A stretch of DNA of 48,126 nucleotides from Bigelowiella natans CCMP2755 (lineage: Eukaryota > Protista > Cercozoa): NCBI GenBank assembly GCA_000320545.1, contig ADNK01000336.1, forward strand, positions 1 to 48,126, in the 5' to 3' direction. Numbering within the stretch: position 1 is the first letter of the stretch; each line of letters starts with the position of its first letter. Under the pieces are notes generated by a model, which worked only from the letters and a program-made list of their open reading frames with translations, was not told where the DNA came from and did not search any database. The translations under genes were made by a program, and so were the position numbers. This document shows positions 13,637 to 34,414 of the stretch, in pieces.

Positions 13637-16130
13637 AGAAGAGGAGAAACAAGGCCCCCCTCCTGCAAGAAAAGGGGGCGAAAAACATACCAGTCAATCG
13701 GCCCACCGAAGGTTCTAATCCAAAGCTCGTCCACCGTTCTATCAGCGTTCTGCTTCACCGCCTTCGCGTCATGCACACTCCTCCTCACAACCGCGTGCTC
13801 GCGAGTTTGCGCCAGCAACGAGAGCGCTGCTTTAGCGACACTCTCGCAAACCCGTTCCTCCTCTTCCTCCTTCTCTTCGACTGCAGATCTGGGCACACAC
13901 CATTGATTCACGCTAACGGAAGTCTCCAGCGACGTAACCTCATGCCACCAATGTCGTGGAACATACAGCAGATCCCCGGGGTCTAAGAAGGCGGTGACAG
14001 TCGCCAGCCGGCGTCTGTGATGATGGCCTTGTATGCTGCCGTCAGTGTTGCAAGCGTCGTCGCCGCGGGGAAATCTTAGTTCGGAGTATATGCTGCCTAC
14101 AAATTGCTTAATCTCAATGCAATGCCTGGAGGAACTATTCTCTCTCTCCCTCTCTCTCTCTCCCCCCCCCCCACCCCCCTTAAACCCCCCCCTCTATTGA
14201 CTACTTTCTTCAAACGGAATTCTCGTCGGTAAGGCGTGGCGAAACTGTCCTGGCTCCATGAGCACCCAACGCTTGCGACCGTAGGCCTGCGCGACGAGGT
14301 TGTACCTATGCACGACGAAAATACGGGTAAGTATCGAGCGAAAACCAACATCTTTGACGAACGCAACCGGAAGTGGATTTTCTCGTGGAAAGCTGCTCGA
14401 TATATCCACGCTCCCAAAACGCCACTTCCCTGCTAATCTTCCTTCTATTCTTCACCCCATTATCATCATCATCATCATCATCATCATCATTATCACGATC
14501 ATCGTCGTCGTCGTTGTTGTTCTTCCTCATCATCCTCACCCACGCTCCAACATAGTCGTAGACATCTTACCCGAATGCATCATAGTGCAACCGAGTCCCC
14601 GCCCCTTCAGAACCGATCCAGAGGACAGGTAGCGACGACGAAGAGGGGGGGGAGGAAGAAGCCGAAGAAGACGATCGCGCCGCTCTAAATGATGCAAAGT
14701 CCGTAGCGTCCACAGCCGCCGCTCGCCGATGGTCATCCGAAAACAACGTCTCGAAGTGTTTGTAGTCCATGTAACCCCAGTACTTTTCCGCAGGAAATAT
14801 CGCCGAAATTGCGCCTGCGGAGGTGAGAACTGATGAGTCTGTCTGCGATGTCGAGGCACTTTCCGAATGCCTTGCAAATGCTCGATACTGCTCGTCATTG
14901 CGAAGTTTACGCCGCTGCGGTGATGGTTTCATCATCATCGTCTCCTCCCTCTCATTCTCTCCTGTTTCTTGGCTGAGAATAGGGTTGGTATCACGCCGCC
15001 TCTTCCTCGATTGGGCAGACTGCGAGGTGCACCCCCCTCGTTGTTTTGGTTGTTGGTGCAACGAAAGCCACTCGCAGAAGGCAGCGACGGTGACGTTGGC
15101 ATGTGAGCACTCGGATTCCCATGGAAGTTGACGACGCTTGTCATTCGGCCCTCTCGCTTCGCTTTCTTCATCATTCTGTTTCTCATCGCCTGTTGTCCTC
15201 CATTTTTGTCGGGCCCTTTCCTTTCCCTGCCCCCCCCTCGAAGGTGCGCTGGGAGTGGAGGTGTCGATTGGGGGCGGGGTTGGCGAGGAGATCCTTGGGA
15301 AGAAACGTGCTTCGGAGACGACGGAAGAAAAGTTACTGTGTGCAAGTAATTCAGGCGTCCATTTTTCGATCTTCCAATTACTGGGACCGCCAGCGCTCTG
15401 CTCATCGTCGCTGCTCTTTCCCTCCTCTTTGTTCACGCCGTTGCGAAGGCTGCCGCCTCGGAACACTATCGGAAAATTGCAATCCCTTGAGGGTAGGGAT
15501 GGGGGAGGGGGGGGGGGGGGGGGGGGGTTGAAGTTTTACGATTCAGTGAATGTGCTTTCGTATTGCTATGCTACGACGACTCTACTACTGCCTCTGCTAA
15601 ATAGTTTCTTGAATATAAGTAACATTCGTAACAATGATATCAGGCATTTAGCTACCGTATTATGTCTGCTGCAAGTGCGACCTGACGACCATCTATCGTC
15701 CTGACAACCGCTAGTGAACCCCCCCCCTGTTTCCGTATCTCTCTTTTATCCCGACGATGTTTCCTCTCCTCCCCCCCCTCTCCCTCCGCCGCCTCCTCCT
15801 CCTCCTCCTCCTCCCCCTTTTGCTGGCGATTCTCCTGGTTTTCACCAACGTCGCCATCTCCTGATTGCCTTTTCTCCCATCCGATAACGTCGAGAAATCC
15901 CAATATACTCACATGTACGTCATTCATATCTGTCGCGCCCTGGCATTTAGCCGTTGTCGCAGGGTCAGGCTGCATTGGGGGGGAGATAACTGCATCTAGT
16001 TGAATAGCAATGTCCTCCCTCGTACCAGCACCTATGTTTCGAGTGAATTCGCCGCGCTCAATCTTGTCGCCGACGAGGAATTGGGCCTGGAACCGTACGC
16101 TGCCATCGCCTATACGCTCGATCCGAGAAT
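10662..16130 (-). CDS. Fusion protein: HSPBAP1-like JmjC 2OG/Fe(II) hydroxylase plus FkbM (Methyltransf_21) SAM-dependent methyltransferase; 5' end probably extends further upstream
   Basis: Exons 16130-15656, 15485-14571, 14305-14205, 14096-13691, 13556-13491, 13297-13105, 12990-12766, 12367-12103, 11969-11682, 11525-11398, 10998-10841 and 10737-10662 join in phase with no stop (~1100 aa). JmjC motifs: WGYMDYKHF, LWIGSEGAGTRLHYDAFGYNLVAQAYGRKRW, PTRIPFEESS, LDPGDLLYVPRHWWHEV. FkbM motifs: ETRYLYQEIF, IVDVGANIGLF, IDLVKIDVEGEELAV, WRRIDRVCVEV. Confidence 0.85.
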
Positions 16131-17698: not shown

Positions 17699-18227
17699 AT
17701 GTCCGACTCGATTAAGATCCCTCGCGACTATGCGTACGTCGTCCTCTCAGTTGGATCGACATGGTTAGAATGCGAGAGTGAGAAGAGGAGGGGAGAAACA
17801 GTGCAATTTTTATCCTATGTCCGTGTCAGTTTGTGCGTCTGCTTCCAATGAGAGAATTTATTTGCGAGTAGGGTGGCCAACTACTTCCTCATTGGTCTTG
17901 TCGCCAAAGCAAGGTGAGAACCTATGTGCTGGTATATTCCTTACCTAAACGGCGTCGTATGGTGTTGTTTACGCTCTGCATTTAGGAAAGAATACGGAGT
18001 TAAGTATCCGAACCTATACGCTGACGAGCGCCACGGCGACTCAGAGCTCAGAGACAAGTCACTACGTGCAATTTTTTGTATAGTGGACCAGTTTTCGGCG
18101 AATTACAATCTCCTGACGCAAATGTTGCTTATTTGGAACAGGTTTAACTCCGTCCAACGTGGCCACCAGAACTTCTTGGAAACATGGCCATCTAGCTGCG
18201 TAAGGCACACGCACGCACGCACGCACC

Positions 18228-18313
<86 letters not shown>

Positions 18314-18744
18314 GTGCCACCGCTCGTTTACTCGCTGAGCTGGATGCATGCACTACGCACTATGAAGCATGAATTGCATTGCCTATATCGCATTCGTAAC
18401 TCTGTTGGAAACTATCTAGGTGCTCATGAGTCTGAACGGGCTTGTTTTCCCCCGGGCATGCGCAGTGATGGGAGGCTTGATCTCCGTAGGACGAATCATC
18501 TACGGCATCGGATACAAGATGGTGATATAGCTAATGTAGGGGTTTCAAGAAAGGAATATACCTTCTTATTTCTCATGTCGATCTTTACGAAGACTTCCAA
18601 CAATTGCTCTAAATATGCATTCTATGACATCAGTACGGGCCAAAGGGGAGGATGCCCGGAGCTATTATCGCGCATTTGGGAGATTTTCCTCTGGTTTTCC
18701 TCACCTTCTACACAGGATACAAGTTGCTCAAAGGAAAGCAATGA
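17699..18744 (+). CDS. MGST3: MAPEG family protein, microsomal glutathione S-transferase 3-like
   Basis: Six exons give MSDSIKIPRDYAYVVLSV..VAKARKEYGVKYPNLYA..FNSVQRGHQNFLE..GRIIYGIGY..GPKGRMPG..KLLKGKQ*, containing the MAPEG signature FNxxQRxHQNxLE. Confidence 0.92.
18231..18310. repeat. (AC)n microsatellite, about 40 units, in an MGST3 intron
   Basis: Directly visible. Confidence 0.97.
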
Positions 18745-19630
18745 AGAAATTTGCAGACTCCGTTTTGCCTCAAGATCTACACCTGAAGGGGCCTAAATGC
18801 GAATCAAGTTGCAAAATCAGCTGCAGCTCGTCTTGCAAGCATTTGTCATTTTAGCCCACGAAGAAGATGTGTATGAATGTGGTACATGGCCATTAGAAAA
18901 ATGTAACCATTTCATCAATCATCCGTCTCATACGTACATGCGTTTCAATGTATACGAGAAATGCCAATCTAGTAATGTGCTACGACGACGCCGAACAAGT
19001 CGAATGCAAGATAAACGCTGCACACACATCACTAATTATACTAGATCGGTCTGCAATTGCATGTGCAGGTTGAGCCAGACTATATATATAGATGGAAAAC
19101 TCCAGACGACTGTTTAGATCCACACCGTATGAACCGCATAGCAGCCGATACGATGCTAGGTGCGTGCGCGTTCTATGTGCGCTGCGATGGACATGCGTGC
19201 AGTTTGTGCATGTTGCAGACATCACATGATCGAACCGCGTGCTAGTGCGGTAGAGTGGCCGCACGTGTGCATGCAACAATGTGCCATATACCATGTATTG
19301 CTAGAGGTTGTGGGATGTTCGGCACGACAAAGTGTTCTAGTCTTCGATCACAGCAACATAAGCCTACTCACTATATGCACTCGCAATGTTAGTGTTCGAA
19401 ACCGTGGCATGTGGTGCATGTCCCGTGTTGTGTTGTCTTTGGGGTGCACTTATTTACACATGCCGCATCACGCCTTATTCAACAAGCTTCGCCTGTAGGG
19501 CGTTTTCTCGCACGCAACATTGCGATTATGACGTCTACATCCCATGCCCAAGTAATGTTACTCGTTGTTCTGCTGACTAAATAAACCGAACACAAATTCT
19601 TCCTTCACTTGATATAATCTAGTTTTGATT

Positions 19631-20284
19631 CTACTTTGTCAATGTCCCATCAGGTTGCACAGGGAGTGAGTTTCCGAACAAATTTGAAGAGTTGTATGGG
19701 AGAGCGATATCCAATTCATTTAGTAGCTTTACCCAATTTGCCTAATTTGTTACGCTTGTTTTCTACTTTGCAATGAATATAGATAAAAAAAGTACCTTTT
19801 CTTCCTGCTCGTTCACTCTTGAAATCGAGAGTTTCAGATTTTCATCGTGATTCTTGACCCTCTGCTCCTCCGTCGCTACCCGTTCCTTTCGGTATTTTTC
19901 TCTTTGATTTTCTATTCTATCTAAAATGACCACCGCTTTGTCGTGCATCCTTTTATTGTGAGCCTATTCAACATAAAAGGTAATCATAAGTACTCAACAA
20001 GATAAATTCTAGGAAAAAAACTTAAAAGTAAACGTAAAGATTGAATCTTACCACAACTGTTTTTCATCATTTTAACGTTTTACCCGTCGTTGTTTGAGAA
20101 GGTGGGCCTCTGCATGCTTCTGTCTTGAATCGAAGCTGGTGTCATTACCAACCACAAAGTCATTTGTAGCTTCGAGGATATGATGTGATGAGCGGGAAAC
20201 TGGTGTTGGCGCTGTTGGCGCCGTTGGCGCTGAGCGGCTTGTCGTCAAAAAAGCGAATAAAACTGTAAGAAGTGAGACGGCCAT
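19631..20284 (-). CDS. Small secreted hypothetical protein: signal peptide, APT repeats, coiled coil (3 exons)
   Basis: Signal peptide MAVSLLTVLFAFLTTSRSA followed by PTAPTAPTP. Phase-0 introns link to AHNKRMHDKAVVILDRIENQREKYRKE..EQEEK and ANWVKLLNELDIALP..DGTLTK*. Confidence 0.6.
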
Positions 20285-20357
20285 CGCTGAATATTGGAAT
20301 GCAGAGATAGATACTGGTGAGAGTGGCAGTGGAGATGATGATTTATTTATTACTCTA

Positions 20358-20359
<2 letters not shown>

Positions 20360-20416
<57 letters not shown>
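20360..20416. repeat. (AT)n microsatellite in the divergent intergenic region upstream of the secreted orphan
   Basis: Directly visible. Confidence 0.97.
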
Positions 20417-20418
<2 letters not shown>

Positions 20419-21227
20419 TTATTTTGGAATCATATAAAGCTACTGTATTTAAAACATAATCGGTGACTAAAATTACTCAGTTTACCACAGCAAGAGAAGA
20501 ATTTAATTCCATAACACAAAAAATGTAAGGCGCTGATTGCATAACACTCTTACCTCTGATTAGCTAGTCGAAGGATTTCATAACAAGAGAGTCATTCGGC
20601 TATATCACGTATGGTAAATACATATCAGGTTGTGAATAGTTGCAAGGAAGGAGAAATCAAAATCCTCGTGTTCGTATAGCCGTATAGCCGATAAACACGT
20701 TATCGAGAGGCAGGAAGAGTTAGAATTGAGGATTTACAGATATCCCTCTCTCCAACCCTTGATTTTCTTTCCCCGATTACATCCCATAAGCCTGTTGCGT
20801 ACCCATTGGCTGTCTTCTAAGCTCGCCTACAATGATACAAGGCCTCCATCATGTGCACGTACGATGATGGGAAAGGTGCTCTGCCAGAGAATTTAAATTC
20901 GAAAAATTAAATTTGAACATTTTTGAATAAAATGGAATGGCGTTTCGTTCGAACGACAAAGAAATAAAAGATAACTTATAAGACTTAATTGCCGGTAGCC
21001 GTAACGGATTAGAAACGTTGAAAACGGACTCGATCGACGCAGGCGACTCACAGAGAGAGCGAGGAGAGATGCTTCGGCAATGAATCTGGTGCTGCGGCTC
21101 TGACAGACCTCCATTTTATCTATCCATCCACTTCCCAATCTCCTCTCCTACACCCTTAACATTATTATGAGAGCATACTTCTCATTCCTTGGATAAACCC
21201 ATACATTCGAGTCGGTAGGTCTTTATT

Positions 21228-22852
21228 ATGGATATGGAAGTCGAGATGTTCGATGGGAGGGACAAACTGAGAGAATACATTCTGAGAGACAGGTTAGGGG
21301 AAGGGCCTAGGTCAATTACTTACCAGGCAGGGAGGAAGGACGGCGACGATGTGGCTCTGGAAGTCATATGGGGAGACTTAAATTACCTGGAGTGTGGAAA
21401 AAAAGCGCTTGAAAAACTGAAAGATTGTGATCACACGGTAAAATTTATCTCGCTTACAATGGGGCTAGAATATACTCATCGAAATGGAGAAAAATCTACG
21501 GTTGATGTAATGGCACTTGAATTGTGTCCGAATGGATCCCTCTTTCCTTACATAAAACATCGCTTGTTTAGTCTGAAGCGTGTACAGGGTTACTTTGGCC
21601 AGCTCTGTTCAGTACTCGAATCCATGAAAGACAAAAACGTTATTCATCGGAATATCGTGCCTCAAAACATCTTACTGGGGGAAAAATGGAACTTAAAAAT
21701 GGCTGGTTTTGGGTATTCTGTCATTGGAAAAGAAGCAAAAGGCCGTGCAGGAACGAAAGGATATATGGCCCCGGAAGTCGATAATTACCCAGCTACAGGG
21801 GAGTCCTATTCCAGAAAGATAGACATTTACAGTTCTGGCGTAGTCCTATTTAATATGCTTTATGGTTGGAATTTCACAAATGTTCGATATGTCGAACGTT
21901 ATCTCAGAAATGGGAATAAACATAAATTTTGGAATAGGCAGTTGAGGTGGATATTACAAAGAAGAGAAAATACACTCCTTCACGCAAGTAGAGGCGAGGA
22001 ACTCTTGTATCAAAGGATTGCTGGCCTCAAAACGGAAGAATATCCAATCGTTATCACATACAGTCTAAATAAAATGGACCCACAAGTTTGCTACGACAGT
22101 AAGGACGTCGAAATGGTTGCTAAAAAGGCTAACAGACTTGCCGAATTAGAAAGAGTTAGAGAGGATACCATTGTGTTTGAAGTGCATAAGATCCTAGAAA
22201 TGGATTTGCTAGATGGAATGCTTGAAACCGATCCTGCTCGTAGGTGGGATTTTGAAGAGATCAAACAGCATCCATTTTATAAGGAGGGATGCGGTTTCTC
22301 CCCAACTAAGCTCGAAGAAAAGCTCGAGGAAAAGTTGAAGAGAATTGAGAAACGCTCACGACCTAAGGAAAGGAGGGATAGTCTTGAAATCAAACAACGA
22401 AGCCGCTTTAGATTGGAAAAATGGAGGGAAGCGCGGGTCGAAGGAGAGGAAGCACAGGTTGTTATGCTGTTATGTCTTGTATTTTGTTCGAATAGATTTT
22501 GCAAAATCCTATTAGTGATGAGTCAGAATAATGCGTGGTTTCACGTTCACGAACTCAACCACGGATATTGGGTCATCATTTTGAGATATTCTCATTCGCT
22601 CCGTGTTTACTCCACACCACCATCGCTTGTTTTATTTGATTCCTACTCCACGTTATGCTCTAGCTTTTGAGTGGAAGAGAGGCAAAGGTGGAAGTGGAAG
22701 CCTCAACAAGCACTAGAGCTGGACCTATCGATAATAAAATAATTGGAACTAAAGGTGTGATGAATTCCGTCTGTATACAACTACTATGAGTCCACTCCTA
22801 CTGTTTGTGTCACAAACTACCCTGGCAATTGACGGTAGTTGATACAATATGT

Positions 22853-22920
<68 letters not shown>

Positions 22921-25900
22921 CAAAATTATTAGTTTAATTACTTAAAATTATAATGGGTATCTCATTATGAGAGATGAAGGCGTAACATTGCCATATAACT
23001 TTAATTTATGTCTTTAGAATATTACAAGAATCTGATTATATACTTATTAAAAAACACATTATCAAAATGTAGATCGTGCTCAGCCAGACGAGGGCACACA
23101 GAGGGAGAATGCGAAAGAACTGACGAATAAACCTACTACGAAGAATGAGGAGATCTACCGGACAGACGACGCCGAGATGCAGTGTGAGCCCCGACTGAGT
23201 GGCGCTGAAGTTGCTCGGTGCTTGCATGAACTGCCATGGAAGGCGCAAAGCAAGGTACAGCTTACAGAGATTTCTCTCCGCTTCGACAAACTCTCATTCG
23301 AGGAAACATGCGGGAAAAACCTACAAAGATTCAATATGCAATTCAAGCGCTATGTGCGGAAGCATATCCCGGGTGTGTTGCGCATACGGCTCCTGAGCGT
23401 TCGTCCAGGGAGTGTCATCGCATATTTTCAGCTTCTTAGGAACGTTTCTACATCCATCAGTAACATCTTAGAAGTTTTTGACAACTCCGATGAAAAGAAA
23501 CACGAGGGGGGCGGCAGCGAATCCGATGGGAATGAAGACCTCGGTGTAGCCTCAGGCATCAAAGTTGTGAAATCTCAGTCAGCGATCAACTTCGTTAACG
23601 AAAGGGAGCAAGAGGGAAAGAAACTAAGAATCGATGAAGTCAAGTCTCATCTCGCTTTCCTGTCCTGGTGCGCCTTATCGAGTAAAGAGAACGAAAACCT
23701 GGATCTAGACCTTGATTCGGAGATGTTTGAGCGTATCGACGAGCTGCCATGTGCTGATGGGAAGAAAGTTGAAACGACACGCTGGAAGGCGACCAAACCG
23801 AATTTAGTGCGAGCTCTAGTCACCAATTGCACCATTTTGCACTATAGCGGTCATGGCATAAAGAATGGTCTTTTATTTGACGAAAAGGGCAAGTCAGTTG
23901 TGATATCCGGTCAAGATTTTCTCAAAGCCATAAAGGATGCTAAAGAGACGGAGACGTATGAACTTAAGCTCGTCTTTCTCGCCGCGTGTCATAGTCAGGC
24001 CGTCGGTAAAGAGGTAGCGAAATTAGTAGACCATGTCATTGTGTGTAAGGAGTCGGAGGAGCTAGGTGACATAAAGGCGCGTATCTTCCAGTACCATTTC
24101 TACCAGTGGTTTTTCCGTGGCGCTACCATATTAAATTCGTTTGAACACGCGAAAGAGTCCATACATAAGCGGGCAGACAGCCTTGCGGAAAGCTACAAGA
24201 ACATGATAAACAACTATAACATCAAGGGAGAAAACGAAACCGCTGCACTAGATATGATCAACGATTATGTCAAGAGCATGCGAAATGAAGCCGAAAAATA
24301 CGTACTGATTCCGGCCGACGGCGACCACAATGTCAAATTTCGTTTCATTGAGTGCAAGCTTCGAGGAAAGAGACGTCGTTATTCTGATTTGAAACATGCG
24401 CGACCAGAGGAATTCATGCCTTACTTGGTAGAGGAAATGAAGACCATCGAGCAGAACTTCGTATCTGATTTAGTGACAGGTTTTGAGCGTCGCGACAGTG
24501 TCAGGAAACGGTGGGTACACATTGTGGGTGCGGAAGGAGCAGGGAAAACCTTCCTTGCGAAAGAGATGGGATGGCGGCTGAGTCATGACATGGACGCGCC
24601 TGACGCAATTTTCTTCATTCAGCTGAAAAATTTATTGAAAAAAGACGACGACGATGGCAATAGAATTTTGACTCACATTGACAGCGAACTGAAAGAAAGG
24701 AGCCAAAAAGGACTGCAGGCGTACGCTAGAACGGGTCAAAAAATCCTGATCATTTTGGATGACTTGGATGTTCTTGGTGTCAATGCGGCCGTAAAAGCGG
24801 CAAATGAACTTCTCGGTTATCCAAACAACCTGGCACTGATGACGACATCTTGCGAGCCCATGCCAATTGGCACACACGCGCTCTTCAGAAAGTACAAGGA
24901 AATCAACCTTATGCCAGAAAATAAAGAATATGCAATGCGACGTTTGTTTCAAAAAGCTCTTCTTGACCTAGATGATGAAGAAGAAGATTCGATGTTGAAA
25001 CGGAACTTAGAATTCCTGGCCAGCAAAAGAGGTGTGCGTTACATTTGGGTGAGGAGTGCGACCGCGAACGGTCTACTGGGGAATCTGCAGAGATCCAAAA
25101 ATAAGCCTTCAAATCCGAAGAACATGGCAAATTGGGCGCTAGAACTCCACAGGTTTTGCAAAGAGGGGAAGGAGGGCGATTCCATTCGTTTGATCGATGA
25201 AAACAAATTTATAAACAAAAGTGAACACATGAATTACAAATTCAAAAGTATGAGAAGAGACATGGATGAAAATGGGAAGAGAGTTTCAATGGAAAAGATG
25301 CAGAACAAAAGCAGGGAAATCATGGGCAAATGGATTCGTCAAATCAAGGAGCCGGATGCTTCAAAAAATCATTTTTACCTTCGTCAGGGCAACAATGTCG
25401 AGGTACCTGCCCACTTGGCATTTGCATTTTCTATGCCTTTGGACAAGCCGGGTTCCATCTTGAACCTAGGAAAGGATGTTGAAATGTTGCAAAAAATGAG
25501 CAAAGAAAATGTTCGTAAAGATGGTACTAAGCTTCACGTATCCAAATGGAGAGCTACTAAAGAAAATATCTCCAAAGCTTTGCGATCGAACTGTTTCGCG
25601 TTGCTGGTGGGTTGCCATTGCACCTTGAAAAAGGGCCTCGAGTTTGAACACGATAATCCTGGAGGAAAGGCAGTCTACGTAAGTCCTGATAAATTTTTCG
25701 AATTGGCGATGGAGGCGCAAGAAACGCCAAAAATGTGTTCTTTGAAAATATTAATGCTGGCTGCATGTCATAGCGAAGCTGTAGCCAAATCATTTAATGG
25801 TTCAAAAGTAGTCGACCATGTGATAGCATGCAACGAAGATTATGAACTGGGCGATCAAGTTGTACGAACATTCCAGAAAGTCTTCTTTGAGAAGTTGTTT

Positions 25901-27266
25901 TGCGGGGCTACGGTCTCAACTTCATTTGAGGCTGCCAAGAAAAAGCTACAGGATATGGCCAATGAGTTAAAGAAAGAGGCTGAGAGTCTTAAGTGTGAAT
26001 ACGATTCTGATCCCAGTCGGATACAAAGTTTGACTAATAAGGCAAATATGCTTAACGAGGAGGTCAAAAAGTACCTCTTGTTGCCAACAGACGGAAATCA
26101 TGACGTCTCATTCTCATTTAGACCGTATTCCTCCCCCCTCACAGCAAAACTTAAAACGTGGATTCCTCCTCAATTGAATAAATTCTATCAATCTCCTTTC
26201 AGTACCAAAATAAATAAGCAACTGAAGTGGGCGATTGATCACTATTTGTTAAGGAATCTATACACAGCCATGCAATCCGATCATGAAAACTCAATGCGTA
26301 GCCGATGGGTGCAAATCACAGGACCAAAAGGGATAGGAAAGACCTCAGTAGCAAAGTTCATTGCCAGCCTTCTAAGACGCTACGACAATGAAGGACCAGA
26401 CGGCATCTTTTGGGTACAGTCGTCATGTTCTTGTGCACAATCACAATTCATAATTAATGTATTTCTTGCATGGACTAAACATTCAGGTTGAGGGAAAGAT
26501 TTATGACGAAGTGATACAAAGTTTCATCAAGCGTCTACCCCAAAACGAATCTTCCCCCACAGAAAAGATCGAAAAATATGATCCTCTTGAAAAGTTCTTC
26601 ACAGAAAAAGATGATCCTCCCACACTACTGGTTTACCATTTTGCTTTTACTTCCCGAATTTGAGACATTCTGAGTTTGAACTAATGTGCCTACTCAGATA
26701 ATCGATGATGTTGATGAAATAAAAGAGGCGGATCACGAGAAGCTCTTCAAATACCTCATGAATCTAAACCGGGGACTCCACATCCTCACAACATCTAATG
26801 CCCCGATCAGAGTGAAGGGCTTCGACTCCAATGTATCATTTGTATTGTTCTATGCACGTGCATGTAATTTATCGTCGAGTGTGGTTTAGTAACCAATCTC
26901 ACATTTGAATAGGTAAAGGATTTGGAGTTGAAATTTCTGACCAAGGAAATTTTCAAAAGAGTTTTTCATGAACGAGCTAGAGACCTAGGAGATTCAAAAT
27001 TCCAGACTCTGGTCAATGAGATCAAGCGTAAACCTTCCTTATTCTCGGAACTATATGGTACATGTGCATCTTGTCATCATTGATCATGTTGTTCTCACTT
27101 GTAATGATGTGGTGTATCAGGGTCAAAGGTGTTCACAGAAATCCACAGGAATCCCCGAACTGCGATCCTTCTCGCACAAAAAATCAAAGAAATGAAGGTC
27201 AAAAAGATCGAGAAATTCCTTTTGGTGGACACCTTTAACAAGTTGGTTGAAGAGAAAGCTCTTTGA
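21228..27266 (+). CDS. ~1743-aa multidomain protein: pseudokinase, TRADD-N/SEA-like domain, CHAT protease, STAND NTPase, CHAT protease, STAND NTPase
   Basis: Exons 21228-22457, 22664-22754, 23073-26413, 26487-26630, 26698-26832, 26913-27057 and 27121-27266 are in phase. Kinase motifs: VALEV, HRN, AGFG, GTKGYMAPE, DIYSSG. CHAT1: ILHYSGHG and LVFLAACHS. NTPase1: GAEGAGKT and ILIILDDLD. CHAT2: LLVGCHC and LMLAACHS. NTPase2: GPKGIGKT, LLIIDDVDE and HRNPRTAILLA. Confidence 0.85.
22856..22916. repeat. Compound (TA)n(TG)n microsatellite in intron 2 of the kinase-CHAT-STAND gene
   Basis: Directly visible. Confidence 0.95.
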
Positions 27267-28261
27267 AATGATCAGTCACGTGGTGTCGCAAATCTGTTTC
27301 TGGAGCATTCGCCAGAACTCTCATTCCAGGAAACGTGTGACAAAAACCTTACCAAGATTCAAGGTCGCATCCAAGCGTTGTGGGCGAAAGCACGTCCCGG
27401 ATTCATTGCGCATGCGGCTCACAAACGCTCATTGGGGAAGTGTCATCGCATTGAATCAACGTGTAGCTGCTTGAGGATGTTTCTACAAGCATCACCAAGA
27501 ACATGTTGCAAATTTTGGTCATTTCGACAACGATTAACATGAGTGCAATTGTAGCGTAGCTCACGCGAAGTCATCATGCGCTGAGTGGTACAAAGTGCAA
27601 CAAAATGCAAAGTGCTGCAAGCATAAACATGGGTTTGACACCGTTCTTGTATTGCTGTCGGTCGCGTCGCGGCCAGCTAGCCAGGGCACATGGCCACTTC
27701 GATGCACAATTGCTAAATTGGGCATTTTGGGGCCTAGTCAGCTAGCAGAATGCGCATCACAGCAACAAAGGGCTAGACAACGGCTTTTGTTGACATGTCG
27801 TAACCCGTCTGATGACTTTGATTGCATAGAGTCAAGTCTAACTGTGCACATCATTTCCAATGCATCGCTGGCTAGCTGGTTGCTGTGGAATACTAGAATG
27901 CGTGTGACGAATGTGTGAGCATCACGTAATGTGTCGTGTAACCATTGAAGTCTAGATGGAGCGTACCGGGTCAAAGGCACACATGTTCCATGAGACACAC
28001 GTGGCTTAATTAGCAAAGAACATGTGCATGGAGCTACACATGTTCGTACCTGCGCGTACGCTATGTAGCTATTGAAGGCTATAGAATATTAGATGTGACT
28101 GCGTGCGGGCGTCAGCACAGCTTGTTCATGCGCGTAGATGTGTGCGGGCGGGCCCGCTAGCCCATGCAATGTAAATACGACTGCTGTGGAGTACACGCTC
28201 TGTGTACCTGTGCATATAGGCAAAGGCACCCTAGCGTGATAATTTACACATCATTTGTTCA

Positions 28262-28687
28262 TCAGTTTTTCCGTTCAGCAGCCTCATCGTTGACAATTGT
28301 AGTGACAATGCAAGACACATTTTTAGCCTTTGCATGCAATCGTTCCTTTCCCATAGATATCACTCTCTGATAATATTACAGCCGCAACGAATCAAAAAAC
28401 TGAAAAAATATTGTGCAGTTGGAAAGCAAATACCTTTGGGACAATCGTGAGCGCTGCGATTGCATCCGCCTCTCGTAGGCCGAACAAAACTCCAAGATTT
28501 ACCACATCATGGACTCCTGTTGTATGTTGTGAAATCAACCCTTCTCATTCTTCTTAATCTCCTCATTCTGACTGCTGTTGTAAATTTTTGACGGATACTG
28601 CAGAAGTGTATGGTATCAGCAGTCATCACCCAAGGTAAGTCATCACGAAAATTCGCATACATATACACACATAAACACACAAAATAG

Positions 28688-28725
<38 letters not shown>

Positions 28726-29031
28726 ATCAAAAATACCTCTAAGCTCCATCGAATGGGTGGCTTCGGATGTTATCAATATCCTCCTCCCTGGTCAGCATCC
28801 AATGAAATGGATCATGGTTTGGAAACGAAAGTGAGAAGGGAAGGGGAGGGGCATGTTTAATTGCCTACCTTTCCTCTTGAGTCTTATGAGCTCAGAAGCA
28901 TTGGAGAATAGGTTTCGTCGGAGCGACTACAGGACAAACAACCCACATATACGGTTACTACACATTCGCTCCTTGTTTCCGACTGCTATTCTTCTCATCA
29001 GCATCCCAATTGTAGCCTCCTTGCCGCCCAT

Positions 29032-29062
<31 letters not shown>

Positions 29063-29208
29063 CCATCATCATCATGAAGCTAAACTGCATCATAAATCGC
29101 AACCTGGTCACGTATAGCTGCAGCGTAGGCAAGTTCGAAGACGATGCCTTTCTTGTCAGCGGCCTGTGTTAGCACGGTGCGGTGTAGATAATGATGGCGT
29201 TGGTGTTA

Positions 29209-29242
<34 letters not shown>

Positions 29243-29713
29243 CGATTGCAAGGGAGCTTATTGCGTTTATCCTTTATCTCTTATTCATGATGCATGTCTA
29301 CCTGTATCATTGGAAGCCGTAAGCGGAACGTCATTCTCTGCCAAAGCTCCAAGCTGATGATTTCTATGCAGTCTAGGGTGCAGCACTACTTTGCAGGGGA
29401 GGGGGTATCGAAAAGGACACATCGGCCACACACGAATAAAGAACAAACATGCATGGACGTTCTTCAATTTACGTGAGAAAGAGAGTGGCGTGTGTTACAG
29501 ATCATTCATAATTAGCATCTCGCAGGTCGGCGACTGCTCATTTGGAGAGGGCTGGGTAGAGGGAGGGAAGGGGGTTCAAAGGGCTGTGGGTGTGATTGTC
29601 ACCTTATCAATTGCTTCTTCTGTTGTAGGCCGCATTGCTACAATATCGAAGCTGGGACCAACGGTAATAATAAACGCAAGGAAGAGAGCAAAAGTGCGCG
29701 CACGCGCACACAC

Positions 29714-29749
<36 letters not shown>

Positions 29750-30596
29750 CCCAGAAAGGAACGCTGTTTTAGTGAAGCCGAGATCAAATTAATACAACCA
29801 TATTGTTATCATTATAGACAACGTGTGGAGCAAACGTTGGCTGGTGGAAAGTACCATTTCCTGTTCTTCGATACTAAAGCGCCTACTGCAGCGACCTCCT
29901 GTTAAGTGACAAATGAAAAGTTAATTAAGAGACATAGGTAACTGCCTGCTCAGACGGAGGATTTCGAACTGAAGAGGGATATGTGCGAAATGGCGAGAGC
30001 AGCGGGTTTGCCTATCACCTGTGCGCTGTCAACCGATATTGTCAGCCGTTGTAGGAGTACTATCTTCTTCGGCGACGGTTCTCCTAAAAGCGATTAGTTG
30101 ATGGAAGAGGGCGCAACATAGGCATGCCAAATCAGTTGAGAAAAAAGATACTAATTTCGACGAATGCAGTCATCTATTACAACCGGGAGTCTCGGGGAGC
30201 GAGAGAGGGCGTGCCTTGTTGTCCTCGTCGTCCTTCTCAGGCGGCACAGCCACCTGCATGTTGTGCGCCAACACGAAGCTGAAATTTGCTACTAGAATGA
30301 AGTTTGATCAAACGCTTTCTAACCGACCACTGGTTCTGGAAGGCCTTTCTTTCGTTCCAACAGTTCCTTAGCCTCGACTATGGTGTTAATTGCGCCGCCG
30401 CTGTATCCGAGCTTCTGCAGCATGGGCTTCACTGTCTGATGATGTGCGAAAACCACTCAATCATGCATGGCCTTAGAGAGGAACAAACAACTCTCATCAT
30501 TCCCACCCTATCCTTTATTTTGGGGCCCCTTCCTACCTTAACATCGTATTTCCCGCCCCCTTTCCGCAGCGGAAGGTTCAGATCGAACGCCAGCAT
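28262..30596 (-). CDS. RPP30: Ribonuclease P/MRP protein subunit p30 (Rpp30/Rpp1), about 12 short exons
   Basis: Spliced peptides: MLAFDLNL, KLGYSGGAINTIV, LLQRLTISVD, FDIVAMRP, KGIVFELAYAAAIRD, RRNLFSNA, GRRILITSEA..ELRGVHDVVNLGVLFGL. The last matches the Rpp30 motif RGPYDVANLGLLFGL. Confidence 0.9.
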
Positions 30597-31043
30597 TCGG
30601 GACTCCGGCTTCGCTTCTGGCTCGATTTGAGCCAGCTGTTTCCAGAACCGATTTAGGATATATTCGGCTTATTTTCCGTGCTATCTTTCTGTCCTGATTG
30701 AGTCAGTCGTCTGTCTTCGACATGCTCGACAGGGATTTTCCCGATAATTTAGCTTTGATTTAGTCGGGAGTATTAGGCAATATCTCTTTTCCAAATCTTC
30801 CGTTTAATTGGGTTCGAGCAGGATAGATGTTTCTAGCGTGTTTTATTTTCTCAAGAGGATCGGGTGAATTAGCGTTGCCCCTTGCAGAAATTCAGGTTGT
30901 CGCATCTATAAAATGGATTATATTTATGGGGATAATTTCTACCAGATTGCGAAATGCGATCCTAAGATCATTAGTCGGAACGAGAGCACAATTGCCCCCT
31001 CCCCCTGTCCCTCCTCCTTCCCCACCACAAAGGGTGATGGACT
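30597..31043. promoter_or_regulatory. Probable bidirectional promoter between RPP30 and the UBA-protein gene
   Basis: Divergent start codons about 450 bp apart. Confidence 0.4.
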
Positions 31044-32557: not shown

Positions 32558-32858
32558 GCTGATATTATGCTAATCGGCCATAATGGTCTGCTATGGCTTT
32601 TTCCTCTCGCTCTGCCCCCTCTCTTTCTCATGAGTGCAAGTACAACTCAAACGCAACACAACTAACCCCTGCCTGCAGTAAAACATGGGTAGCATAACAC
32701 GCTTATTCTAAATGCCCTGCTATGTGCATTATACAATCCAGAACTACGAGGACTTTGCGGAGAGAGAGAATTCGCCCATTGAAAATATGGTCGACAAGAA
32801 AAATTATATCAGTTATAATTTTATCATGAGAACACACACACACACAAACACACACACT

Positions 32859-32908
<50 letters not shown>

Positions 32909-33254
32909 ATGCATTTTTTTTTTTATATCTTCACACACTCGGATAGATGAATCTTCTTAAGTGCCCCCCCACCTTCCCCCCCCCCCCGTCTCTGACACGA
33001 CACACAGGTTGAGCTAGGAATCTGCGATCGAAGCACCGCTGCATACGCGCTGTATCACAACAGAGGCGATTTGGAGAGAGCGGTAAGGCCATTTTCAAGC
33101 AACAACTTATGATTCATTAACCGTACAACTTATGATTCATTAACCGTACCCTTCGTCGTGTCGTCGTTCACGACTGTTTTGTACTGCTATGTGCTACTAT
33201 TTATAGGCTGATGAGATTCTCTCTCGCGTGGAATCGAAGAAAAATTTGAGTGCG

Positions 33255-33298
<44 letters not shown>

Positions 33299-34414
33299 CA
33301 CATGCACGCACTCGCGCCCACACATCTCTACTACATGTCTACTTTCACTGATAATATCAGCGGATATATGACAAAAATTCAATAGAATCTAACGCACACC
33401 AAAGCGCATGGCCTCGTAATTGTTAATCAATATCACACGTATGCAGGAAACAACGCCCGGGGAAAGCGCCGAACGGGTAGGAGAAATTAGCACAGCTATG
33501 CACGCCGTCCGTCTCCACGCATTCTTTCGGGTGTCAGAAGGGCTTGCTTTCGCACCTATTTCCCTACTTCCTACCTAAAAAGGCAACGGTGGTCATTCGA
33601 AATCGATCGTTCACTTCTTTGCAGAAACAGAGAAGTGGTCATTGCTGCTGTTCTCCGTTTGAGTCGTCATGCCACGAGTAGTAGGCTGCTGCCTCTTATT
33701 CTATGTTTAAACGCTAAAAGGCAAAGCTCAGCCTGTCTTCGATCGGAGCGAGGCCATGGAGAGTCTAGTTGATGACATCAGACGAAGGTATTAGCGTAAG
33801 GGGGAGGAGGATGTATATGTGTGTGCTGTGTGTGTGTGTGTGTGTTTGAACGTACGATGAGCGGAAAGGATTGACCCTTCTAACTTCGCACGTTGGACAC
33901 GCAAAACCAGAAGACATCTGTGTTTTGTCGTTTTGATGATAACGTCCTCTTCTCCCAATGACGACGAAGAAGCTCATCTAAACACGAAATCGTTGCGCTC
34001 AAAATCAATCCCAGTGGATTTGAGGACGCTGACGTATGAAGTACGATTGTTTCTCTTACAAGAGTGCTCTTTTTCCTTTTTTTTTCCTCCCCCCCCCCCC
34101 CCCCCCCCCCGATTTATTCAGGCTGCACGTAAACTTGGGAGGAGGCAGAAATGTAATGAGCCCATGCAATCACGCACATCTGGTGTATTTTTTTGGAAGA
34201 GGATAACCTCTTTCACTTCCATGAAGAATGTCTTCAGATTTATGCTCGTACAATTCGTGCTATTTGATGATCACGAGTTGTTCTTGTTATGATCATTAGA
34301 TGATCGTTCGGTTATCCTCCGCGGAGGACATCTCCAATGCTGTATTCACGGCATTATCACGGTAACATCTACAACGTATGGCCACAATATAAAGAAGTGA
34401 TACATAATGTATAA

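Follow-up and report, generated by a model that had tools for sequence, protein, structure and literature searches.

An expressed seven-exon gene of Bigelowiella natans encoding a pseudokinase followed by two predicted CHAT protease-NTPase cassettes

Gene structure and transcripts

The window analysed here is a 48,126-nucleotide stretch of genomic DNA from the marine alga Bigelowiella natans. At positions 21228-27266 of its forward strand, on which all features described below are read, lies an expressed, spliced gene of seven exons with a product of 1743 aa. The domains of this protein follow each other in the order pseudokinase, linker and 'adaptor' region, CHAT domain with a short NB-ARC-like NTPase (unit 1), charged linker, and a second CHAT domain with a short NTPase (unit 2). 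The coding length is 5232 nt, i.e. 1743 codons and a stop codon at 27264-27266, as given by phase arithmetic in agreement with the splice dinucleotides.

All six introns are of the GT..AG type and are backed by spliced transcript contigs from runs X1, X5 and X6, which belong to three different studies. The splice joints are 22457/22664, 22754/23073, 26413/26487, 26630/26698, 26832/26913 and 27057/27121. That the contig runs are RNA libraries is a guess, but joined forms without introns show that they derive from RNA. In each of the three runs, a single contig links the kinase exon through exon 2 to the large third exon. Exon 2 (22664..22754) is a 91-nt linker exon with joints at both ends in all three runs; it has no recognisable domain and no Pfam match. 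In the one run of raw RNA reads, expression of the gene appears low. The sequence-only reading of this DNA had joined two open reading frames of 480 and 1104 aa and four small exons in phase into one polypeptide of seven exons, and the transcript contigs bear this out. That the gene model wrongly merges a kinase gene with one or two separate CHAT-NTPase genes is highly improbable: the closest relatives of every segment are separate genes and no contig spans the whole locus, the middle of which is one uninterrupted exon, but exons 1, 2 and 3 are spliced in phase across GT..AG introns in contigs from three studies, and units 1 and 2 share one stop-free exon.

Domains of the encoded protein

Exon 1 (21228..22457; 410 aa) encodes a kinase fold at about residues 17-350 of the protein, including an insert of about 100 aa. 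It matches Pfam Pkinase (PF00069) at 96.8 bits (cut-off 31.7; E 1.9e-27), and PDB kinases down to 2e-17. In alignment to PHKG2 and ULK3, its catalytic motifs read VALEV, HRNIVPQN and GFG. Thus, the beta3 Lys is replaced by Glu (codon 21360), the Asp of HRD by Asn (21651), the catalytic-loop Lys by Val (21657) and the Asp of DFG by Gly (21705). Because all four catalytic residues are replaced, we regard the product of exon 1 as a pseudokinase; the activation segment and the APE motif are retained. The nearest paralog, P0164 at locus C3601, is an intact standalone protein of 522 aa, which is 68% identical and keeps all four residues in VALKV, HRDIKPDN and DFG. Its best PDB matches indicate a CAMK-like kinase. 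About 32% of the residues differ between the two, and the chance that all four catalytic positions are among them is about 0.01 by our own arithmetic, which assumes that the differences are randomly placed. The dead kinase of the sequence-only reading was therefore correctly recognised. Further pseudokinases of the same subfamily, encoded at C2623, are unfused, so that the death of the kinase need not relate to the fusion.

The start of exon 3 (23073..23626) comprises a unique linker (23073-23176) and a region of about 150 aa that had been labelled an adaptor. Elsewhere in the B. natans genome, this region was found only at loci C590 and C1201 and in one relic. The fold of this 'adaptor' is not identifiable: a Pfam search gave no match, the AF2 model has a pLDDT of 38, and the Atlas yielded weak leads only (SEA 0.82, TRADD-N 0.80). 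The relic is a frameshifted second adaptor directly 3' of the stop codon (27316..27507; tblastn 3e-6), with 74-76% identity to the adaptor DNA of C590 and C1201 in blastn.

CHAT domain 1 spans 23627..24376, with His226 at codon 23852 and Cys271 at codon 23987, in the contexts YSGHG and LAACHS. CHAT domain 2 spans 25400..26146, with His814 at codon 25616 and Cys864 at codon 25766, in the contexts VGCHC and LAACHS. Residue numbers of the CHAT domains follow the open reading frame from 23177, and all four codons are those named before. A Gly is usual beside the catalytic His; in unit 2 and its seven paralogs, all of which keep VGCH, this position is a Cys. The model of domain 1 has a pLDDT above 90, and its best structural match is the SAVED-CHAT protein 8tl0 (Z 23.1, rmsd 2.3 A, 197 aa). 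The same protein is matched by the unit 1 sequence in phmmer at 1.4e-4 and by the family profile at 9e-18. Pfam CHAT matched 38 of the 43 homologues (best 9e-15), among which H226 and C271 are nearly invariant, and H814, C864 and a Ser are invariant in 41 sequences. The protein's own sequence scored 20.8-21.8 bits with Pfam CHAT (PF12770), below the gathering cut-off of 24 bits, and the His-Cys stretch is likewise matched, weakly, by C14, C25 and C13. Profile, model and dyads support the prediction that both domains are CHAT-clade proteases of the caspase superfamily (clan CD) with intact dyads, as had been proposed. The scores of the protein's own sequence lie below the curated Pfam cut-offs, and both this assignment and the NB-ARC assignment below rest on family profiles and the model.

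NTPase 1 (24495..25276) is NB-ARC/NACHT-like and is followed by a charged linker up to about 25399. Its motifs are a Walker A GAEGAGKT (24527-24550), a Walker B ILIILDDLD (24743-24769), TTSC (24842-24853) and a GLPL-like NP (about 25109-25140). NTPase 2 (26321..27266) is encoded by the end of exon 3 and by exons 4-7 (26487-26630, 26698-26832, 26913-27057 and 27121-27266), whose joints all occur in transcript contigs. It has a Walker A GPKGIGKT (26321-26344), a Walker B IIDDVDE (26698-26718), TTSN (26788-26799) and a GLPL-like HRNPRTAILLA (27144-27176). Its Walker B is split by an intron, since IIDDVDE comes after the LL that closes exon 4; exon 5 aligns to the Walker B/TTS region of unit 1, and the end of NTPase 2 resembles the short B. 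natans forms P0011 and P0003.

Both units carry a Walker A of the form GxxxxGK[TS] and a Walker B of the form hhhhDD. On the 1104-aa open reading frame, Pfam NACHT reached 34.0 bits over two stretches (cut-off 26.7) and AAA_16 34.8 bits (cut-off 32.6), and on a single unit NACHT reached 25.3 bits, below its cut-off. The family profile matched AfsR (1e-19), Apaf-1 (4e-17) and plant CNLs (1e-11); the NTPase's own sequence alone matched no STAND protein in the PDB. In structural comparison, Cdc6/ORC, NSF, NLR and CED-4 were tied at Z scores of 12-14, and residues 409-694 of the unit 1 model align to the NBD plus lid of Cdc6, CED-4 and NLR. By family profile, both NTPases are predicted to be of the NB-ARC/Apaf-1 type.

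Both NTPases consist of a P-loop domain and the first helical domain only (NBD + HD1). No winged helix of the MHD type was detected after unit 1, where a charged or helical stretch of about 100 residues, modelled with low confidence, leads to unit 2; unit 2 itself stops 33 aa past its GLPL-like motif and leaves no room for one. Other family members continue for another 230-690 residues. Furthermore, the sensor-I Arg (TTR, RNBS-B) is absent: unit 1 has Cys in its place (TTSC) and unit 2 reads TTSN, while T[ST]R is found in most homologues. The loss of the sensor-I Arg, the lack of space for a winged helix in unit 2 and its non-detection in unit 1 make canonical ADP/ATP switching and oligomerisation uncertain. 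Hence, the two STAND-type P-loop modules of the sequence-only reading stand by Walker motifs and family profile, but in a short form that lacks the sensor-I Arg, and its 'apoptosome-like oligomeriser' was overstated. Its remark that a C-terminal repeat sensor is missing was right; neither unit has repeats.

Family and mosaic origin

In the B. natans genome, about 30 or more loci carry the CHAT-NTPase cassette. The gene is a member of this CHAT-NB-ARC (NLR-like) family, relatives of which are found both in bacteria and in other chlorarachniophytes. Homologues of the cassette carry TPR, LRR, SH2 or SPRY domains. C590 and C1201 have NB-ARC (3.7e-13), DUF7779 and TPR ahead of adaptor-CHAT-NTPase in one open frame, and C2355 encodes a standalone cassette of 600 aa (JGI model P0167, Bigna1 135602). 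None of these three loci has the pseudokinase or a second cassette.

Each segment of the gene has its closest relative in a separate gene. The kinase segment (21139-22352) has 83% nucleotide identity to C3601, the adaptor-CHAT-NTPase segment 87.5% to the tail of the NB-ARC-TPR NLR genes, and the unit 2 segment 74% to C2355, introns included. The protein identity of unit 1 to C590/C1201 is 76-86% and that of unit 2 to C2355 is 72%, and the two units are 36% identical to each other over 346 aa (E 2e-50). Values of dS are lowest in unit 1 (0.17), followed by the kinase segment (0.23) and unit 2 (0.46). These sequence comparisons show a mosaic gene of three sources and young age, in which copies of a kinase gene and of the adaptor-CHAT-NTPase tail of an NLR gene were placed ahead of a resident standalone cassette gene; its two cassettes did not arise by local tandem duplication. 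The dead kinase therefore occupies the spot that the NB-ARC-TPR sensor has in the paralogs.

Pairwise dN/dS against the donors is 0.71 for the kinase segment and 0.84 for unit 1, high values that diversifying selection and relaxed constraint explain equally well. For unit 2, dN/dS is 0.27-0.34, which shows purifying selection. The high values of the kinase and unit 1, together with the adjoining adaptor relic, the mosaic breakpoints in the DNA, the low depth of raw RNA reads and the loss of the sensor-I residue, would fit an evolutionary by-product: a recent chimera of a high-turnover gene family, which undergoes transcription and splicing but is not selected for any function as a fusion, and whose kinase and unit 1 drift. 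We consider this unlikely, as the frame of 1743 codons is unbroken over six correctly spliced introns, both His/Cys dyads and both sets of Walker A/B motifs are intact, and the kinase, 68% of which is unchanged, has lost precisely its four catalytic residues.

The combination of a pseudokinase and a double cassette was absent from the 150 best homologues and from the literature searched, and among these homologues the pseudokinase fusion was not found in other species. Proteins that join CHAT and STAND domains are already known, as CHAT-NLRs from fungi and bacteria. The 'all-in-one device' proposed earlier is a young, lineage-specific chimera within a large, fast-evolving family rather than a conserved machine.

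Comparison with known systems and possible function

In fungi, CHAT-NLRs are known as well as CHAT proteases that cleave gasdermin, such as Q2L-6 of P. anserina, which cleaves a neighbouring gasdermin (PMC8851545, PMC10197012). Fungal CHAT-NLRs and HET-Q2-like proteins resemble the B. natans protein in that a CHAT protease is joined to a STAND NTPase within large, variable gene families. However, fungi have either tripartite forms (protease, NOD, repeats) or the repeat-CHAT type (TPR-CHAT Q2L-6), with a single protease and usually a gasdermin neighbour. In contrast, the B. natans protein lacks repeats, begins with a pseudokinase and has two cassettes with truncated NODs, and a gasdermin search, itself uninformative, gave no match. 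In bacteria, conflict systems repeatedly combine caspase-like, STAND and kinase domains, but as multi-gene operons (PMC7159879, PMC8195603); no bacterial protein with the B. natans domain order was among the top 150 matches. SAVED-CHAT, the best structural match to CHAT domain 1, has a protease that is activated by oligomer assembly, but its switch is the cyclic-nucleotide-binding SAVED domain rather than an NTPase.

With Apaf-1 and CED-4, the protein shares the hhhhDD Walker B, TT(R/S) and GxP-like motifs besides the profile match to the Apaf-1 NB-ARC, and it may share the logic of an NTPase platform that activates a caspase-type protease. It differs in that protease and NTPase are covalently linked, the NTPase ends after HD1, neither WHD/HD2 nor WD40 repeats nor a sensor-I Arg were found, and oligomerisation is putative. 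Plant NLR-IDs and the pseudokinase-guarded ZAR1 likewise combine a dead copy of an active host kinase with an NLR-type machine (PMC9528084, PMC10561179), but in another lineage, with another NOD and with CC or TIR instead of a protease as effector domain; a decoy role of the B. natans pseudokinase is our inference.

Our preferred reading, held tentatively and with somewhat less than even confidence, is that the gene encodes a regulated NLR-type protease in defence or cell death, in which the dead kinase provides the input and the NTPases would drive CHAT activation. The kinase is taken as the input module because of its location where the paralogs have the NB-ARC-TPR sensor. It could imitate the active paralog kinase or serve as its decoy, and so be bound or modified by a pathogen factor; alternatively, it could be a docking site for partners of that kinase. 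A change in the input would free a nucleotide-dependent association of NBD-HD1 within a chain, between chains or with other family members. This association may gather the CHAT domains and so switch on the cleavage of substrates, much as in proximity-activated caspases and SAVED-CHAT filaments, and the end result would be defence or cell death.

A different purpose follows if the protein is an endogenous switch, in which the pseudokinase serves as a scaffold or phospho-acceptor that couples the alga's own kinase network, including P0164, to protease activation in stress-induced or developmental cell death or in protein processing. The retained activation segment and APE motif, the intact standalone paralog and the SH2 domains on family members in other species, which suggest coupling to phosphorylation signalling, are consistent with such a switch. 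Nevertheless, it seems doubtful, since a large, fast-evolving, modular family with NB-ARC-TPR/LRR partners is the signature of a conflict system rather than of housekeeping signalling, and the fusion, of recent origin, did not turn up in other species among the best homologues.

Within the preferred reading of a defence or cell-death protease, a mechanism that combines decoy and cell death is plausible. The decoy idea gains some support because the pseudokinase, copied recently from a standalone kinase that looks active, stands at the position of the NB-ARC-TPR sensor. Of the two marks of an integrated decoy, descent from a host protein targeted by an effector and activation of the receptor by effector binding, this approaches the first only. 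We know of no pathogen or effector of B. natans. A true integrated decoy, in which the dead copy of P0164 would bait a viral or parasite factor and fire a repeat-less double-protease machine, is quite unlikely at present. If it were true, however, an NLR-ID-style receptor would have evolved independently in a rhizarian alga, and the swap of its sensor, from NB-ARC-TPR to pseudokinase, would be visible between near-identical paralogs.

Structure and transcripts of the fusion gene

Transcript contigs from runs of three studies were mapped on positions 21290-27289. All six GT..AG joints of the seven-exon structure (22457/22664, 22754/23073, 26413/26487, 26630/26698, 26832/26913 and 27057/27121) were present in each run, and one contig per run bridged the kinase exon, exon 2 and the big third exon. 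The exon lengths of 1230, 91, 3341, 144, 135, 145 and 146 nt maintain the frame, giving 1743 codons followed by the stop codon (27264-27266), while the ATG at 21228 is preceded by a stop three codons upstream. Hence, the sequence-only reading of 21228-27266 (forward strand) as one in-phase spliced polypeptide agrees with the transcripts, and the His and Cys codons and Walker motifs that it named were all located.

Intron 2 (318 nt) contains a compound (TA)n(TG)n microsatellite at 22855-22917, where the reads appear cut. At 25204-25291, high-depth contigs showed replaced or duplicated letters. These contigs, like the odd joints at 25204, 25256 and 25291, are cross-mapped transcripts of two paralogs, on contigs C590 and C1201 of the same assembly, which have a tandemly duplicated 'RDMDENG' motif there. 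Judging by contig depth, these paralogs appear more highly expressed than the fusion gene. An Rfam search of 18000-31000 gave no match, the ORFs neighbouring the fusion gene showed no informative domain, and the ORF at 14570-15466 (minus strand) had no Pfam match.

Kinase, protease and NTPase modules

Exon 1 encodes a protein-kinase domain (Pfam, 1.9e-27), with ULK3, PHKG2, BRSK2, Aurora and AMPK as its top PDB matches. Compared with the PDB kinases, it reads VALEV for VAIK, HRNIVPQN for HRDLKPEN and GFG for DFG; thus four catalytic residues are gone, and the kinase is dead, as had been proposed. Its closest relative, 68% identical, is a standalone kinase on contig C3601, represented by the complete 522-aa transcript P0164, which retains all four residues (VALKV, HRDIKPDN, DFG). 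No cassette was found within about 11 kb of that gene. The same subfamily has live members on C2423 and C478 and more dead copies, arranged in tandem, on C2623. The two dead copies of the latter contig (C2623:20249-23939) have HRN plus GFE or AFE replacing DFG, and could form a tandem-pseudokinase gene; the second is divided over several exons.

The kinase is followed by a linker ('adaptor') and by two cassettes, units 1 and 2, each consisting of a CHAT protease and a short NTPase (residues numbered from 23177). Taken as a single sequence, the protease scored 21.8 bits against Pfam CHAT, just under the 24-bit cut-off, and 1.4e-4 against the SAVED-CHAT protease 8tl0; the caspase, gingipain and legumain families matched the same stretch weakly. 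An exhaustive homologue search yielded 976 relatives, of which 43 were aligned. Pfam CHAT was matched by 38 of these 43 (best 9e-15), and their profile matched 8tl0 at 9e-18. The AlphaFold model of residues 1-774 had a pLDDT above 90 over residues 150-400, and superposed on 8tl0 with a Z score of 23.1 and an rmsd of 2.3 A over 197 residues. Across the family, His226 and Cys271 of unit 1 show hardly any substitution. The two units share 36% identity over 346 residues (E 2e-50), and in an alignment of 41 sequences His814, Cys864 and Ser866 of unit 2 are conserved without exception. The claim of two caspase-superfamily CHAT domains therefore stands, for unit 1 by profile and superposition and for unit 2 by homology to unit 1, with His and Cys kept in both. 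Seven paralogs that are 51-68% identical share the unusual VGCH context around His814, which is thus a subfamily trait rather than decay. A complex prediction of the two CHAT domains scored 0.00, which is no answer and has no bearing for or against their pairing.

Both NTPase units carry GxxGxGKT, hhhhDD, a TTS motif and then a GLPL-like NP motif, the second Walker B being interrupted by intron 4 (LL/IIDDVDE). Among the 43 homologues, NACHT was matched by 25 and NB-ARC by 20, and the family profile matched AfsR (1e-19), Apaf-1 (4e-17) and plant CNLs. The fusion protein alone reached 34 bits against NACHT, above the cut-off, with both units summed, whereas one unit (25.3 bits) did not pass. A single-sequence PDB search with the NTPase 1 region gave no meaningful match and no STAND protein, and structural Z scores of 12-14 did not separate STAND, Cdc6/ORC and classical AAA+. 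Furthermore, the TTR/sensor-I motif has Cys instead of arginine in unit 1 (24842-24853) and Asn in unit 2 (26788-26799). According to the alignment, the arginine is also lost in the unit-2-type B. natans proteins P0003, P0008 and P0011, but kept in most family members. Of the two STAND-type P-loop NTPases proposed earlier, the Walker motifs hold, and the family profile points to NB-ARC/Apaf-1; support from the single sequence is thinner, and the modules are short and lack the sensor-I arginine.

Because the NTPase module stops after the first helical domain, we describe these NTPases as 'short' NODs that lack sensor repeats. In unit 2, the chain ends 33 residues past the GLPL-like motif, as in P0003 and P0011/P0167, short proteins of B. 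natans, so that C-terminal sensor repeats are indeed absent; other family members extend 230-690 residues further, into TPR, LRR, SPRY or STAT-type SH2 regions. From its predicted length, unit 2 is too short for a winged helix, and no such domain was seen in unit 1.

The adaptor had no Pfam match, and an AlphaFold model from three sequences was unusable (pLDDT 38). The ESM Atlas gave weak leads only (SEA 0.82, TRADD-N-like 0.80), under the level that counts; the SEA-like 'RPGSV' resemblance is therefore not supported.

Mosaic origin and paralogs

DNA comparison revealed that the fusion gene is a three-part mosaic on the forward strand. The kinase segment (21139-22352) has 83% nucleotide identity to the C3601 kinase gene, the adaptor-unit 1 segment (23181-25320) has 87.5% identity to the C590 and C1201 genes in their 3' part, and the unit 2 segment (25365-27291), introns included, has 74% identity to the C2355 cassette gene and 69% to C3059. 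The C2355 gene encodes the standalone cassette P0167 (JGI Bigna1/135602) at about 98% identity. In addition, 50 nt past the stop codon, a frameshifted adaptor relic (27316-27507, forward strand; 74-76% identity to the C590/C1201 adaptor) suggests that an older cassette copy formerly lay downstream. Each cassette is closer to relatives elsewhere than to the other unit, and the two fall in different subfamilies; an internal tandem duplication is therefore wrong.

The exon 1 kinase and its C3601 relative gave a dS of 0.23 and a dN/dS of 0.71, and unit 1 and C590 gave 0.17 and 0.84, whereas unit 2 had a dS of 0.46-0.77 and a dN/dS of 0.27-0.34. Hence, the resident unit 2 is constrained, while the newly acquired parts are fast-evolving.

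The C590 gene consists of a single 2253-codon open frame, which encodes an NB-ARC (3.7e-13), DUF7779, about 22 TPR repeats, the adaptor, CHAT and a short NTPase; the C1201 gene is similar in build. In these paralogs NB-ARC-TPR precedes adaptor-CHAT-NTPase, whereas the fusion gene has the dead kinase there. From this domain order, the dead kinase therefore occupies the place that a full NLR sensor and switch has in the closest paralogs. The region C590:20000-38900 is a cluster of NLR-type genes, with a second NB-ARC-TPR ORF downstream of the 2253-codon frame (L021:103-2688, minus strand) and another cassette at 32649-33749.

No further locus in the 91.4-Mb assembly pairs the kinase subfamily with a cassette, and neither a kinase motif nor two CHAT motifs occur in any of the best 150 representative homologues. 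Similarity searches were run by single exons. With the kinase exon, the protein search returned the paralog transcript P0164 only; with the 1113-aa exon 3, no match was obtained among 8000 word-sharing candidates, a blank rather than an absence. The nearest database relatives are proteins of B. natans, Norrisiella sphaerica and Partenskyella glossopodia. PADLOC gave generic kinase matches only and nothing for the cassette, and NCBIfam matches were generic as well.

Proposed activation and meaning

In characterised relatives, an NTPase or filament platform brings caspase-type proteases together and thereby switches them on, as in Apaf-1 and SAVED-CHAT, in agreement with the title of entry 8tl0. 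The CHAT protease Q2L-6 of P. anserina cleaves an adjoining gasdermin, and other fungal CHAT proteases occur in NLR-like architectures (PMC8851545, PMC10197012); a Pfam Gasdermin search of the B. natans genome gave no match and no substrate candidate, although the controls were silent too, which makes this blank uninformative. Because these characterised relatives work so, each cassette would be an assembly-activated protease, with the dead kinase as its probable input. An integrated decoy (PMC9528084) would have the appearance seen here, a recently inactivated copy of a live kinase in place of NB-ARC-TPR. Just as well, the pseudokinase could serve endogenous signalling as a docking module, or the fusion gene could be a drifting by-product. 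A relative-rate test for faster evolution of the fused kinase gave no clear signal, with unique changes of 14 versus 12 with one outgroup and 10 versus 2 with another. With about a third of the residues differing, the chance that all four catalytic positions differ is, by our arithmetic, about 0.01 if differences are random.

CHAT with STAND is known in fungi and bacteria (PMC8851545, PMC10197012, PMC7159879, PMC8195603); the literature searched, including these papers, does not mention it in Bigelowiella or chlorarachniophytes. The new elements are the pseudokinase in place of the sensor, the presence in one chain of two cassettes from different subfamilies, the truncated NODs, and the recent, traceable assembly of the gene. 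The fusion gene is well supported and instructive, yet young and lineage-specific, and its function is predicted.

NLR-type immune and cell-death machines have been much studied in animals, plants, fungi and lately bacteria, but to our knowledge hardly at all in free-living protists. Loss of the sensor-I arginine bears on whether the NTPase modules hydrolyse or merely bind nucleotide, and a NOD truncated to NBD and HD1 poses the question whether a minimal module can drive assembly. The same protease/NTPase cassette occurs in three settings, by itself, after an NB-ARC-TPR sensor and after a recently inactivated kinase copy; with a few constructs, this natural experiment allows a direct test of what can act as the sensor of an NLR-like protease. 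The integrated-decoy idea, if true, would reach beyond plants; if the fusion gene is a neutral by-product, it still records the dynamics of exon shuffling in an expanded protist NLR-like family.
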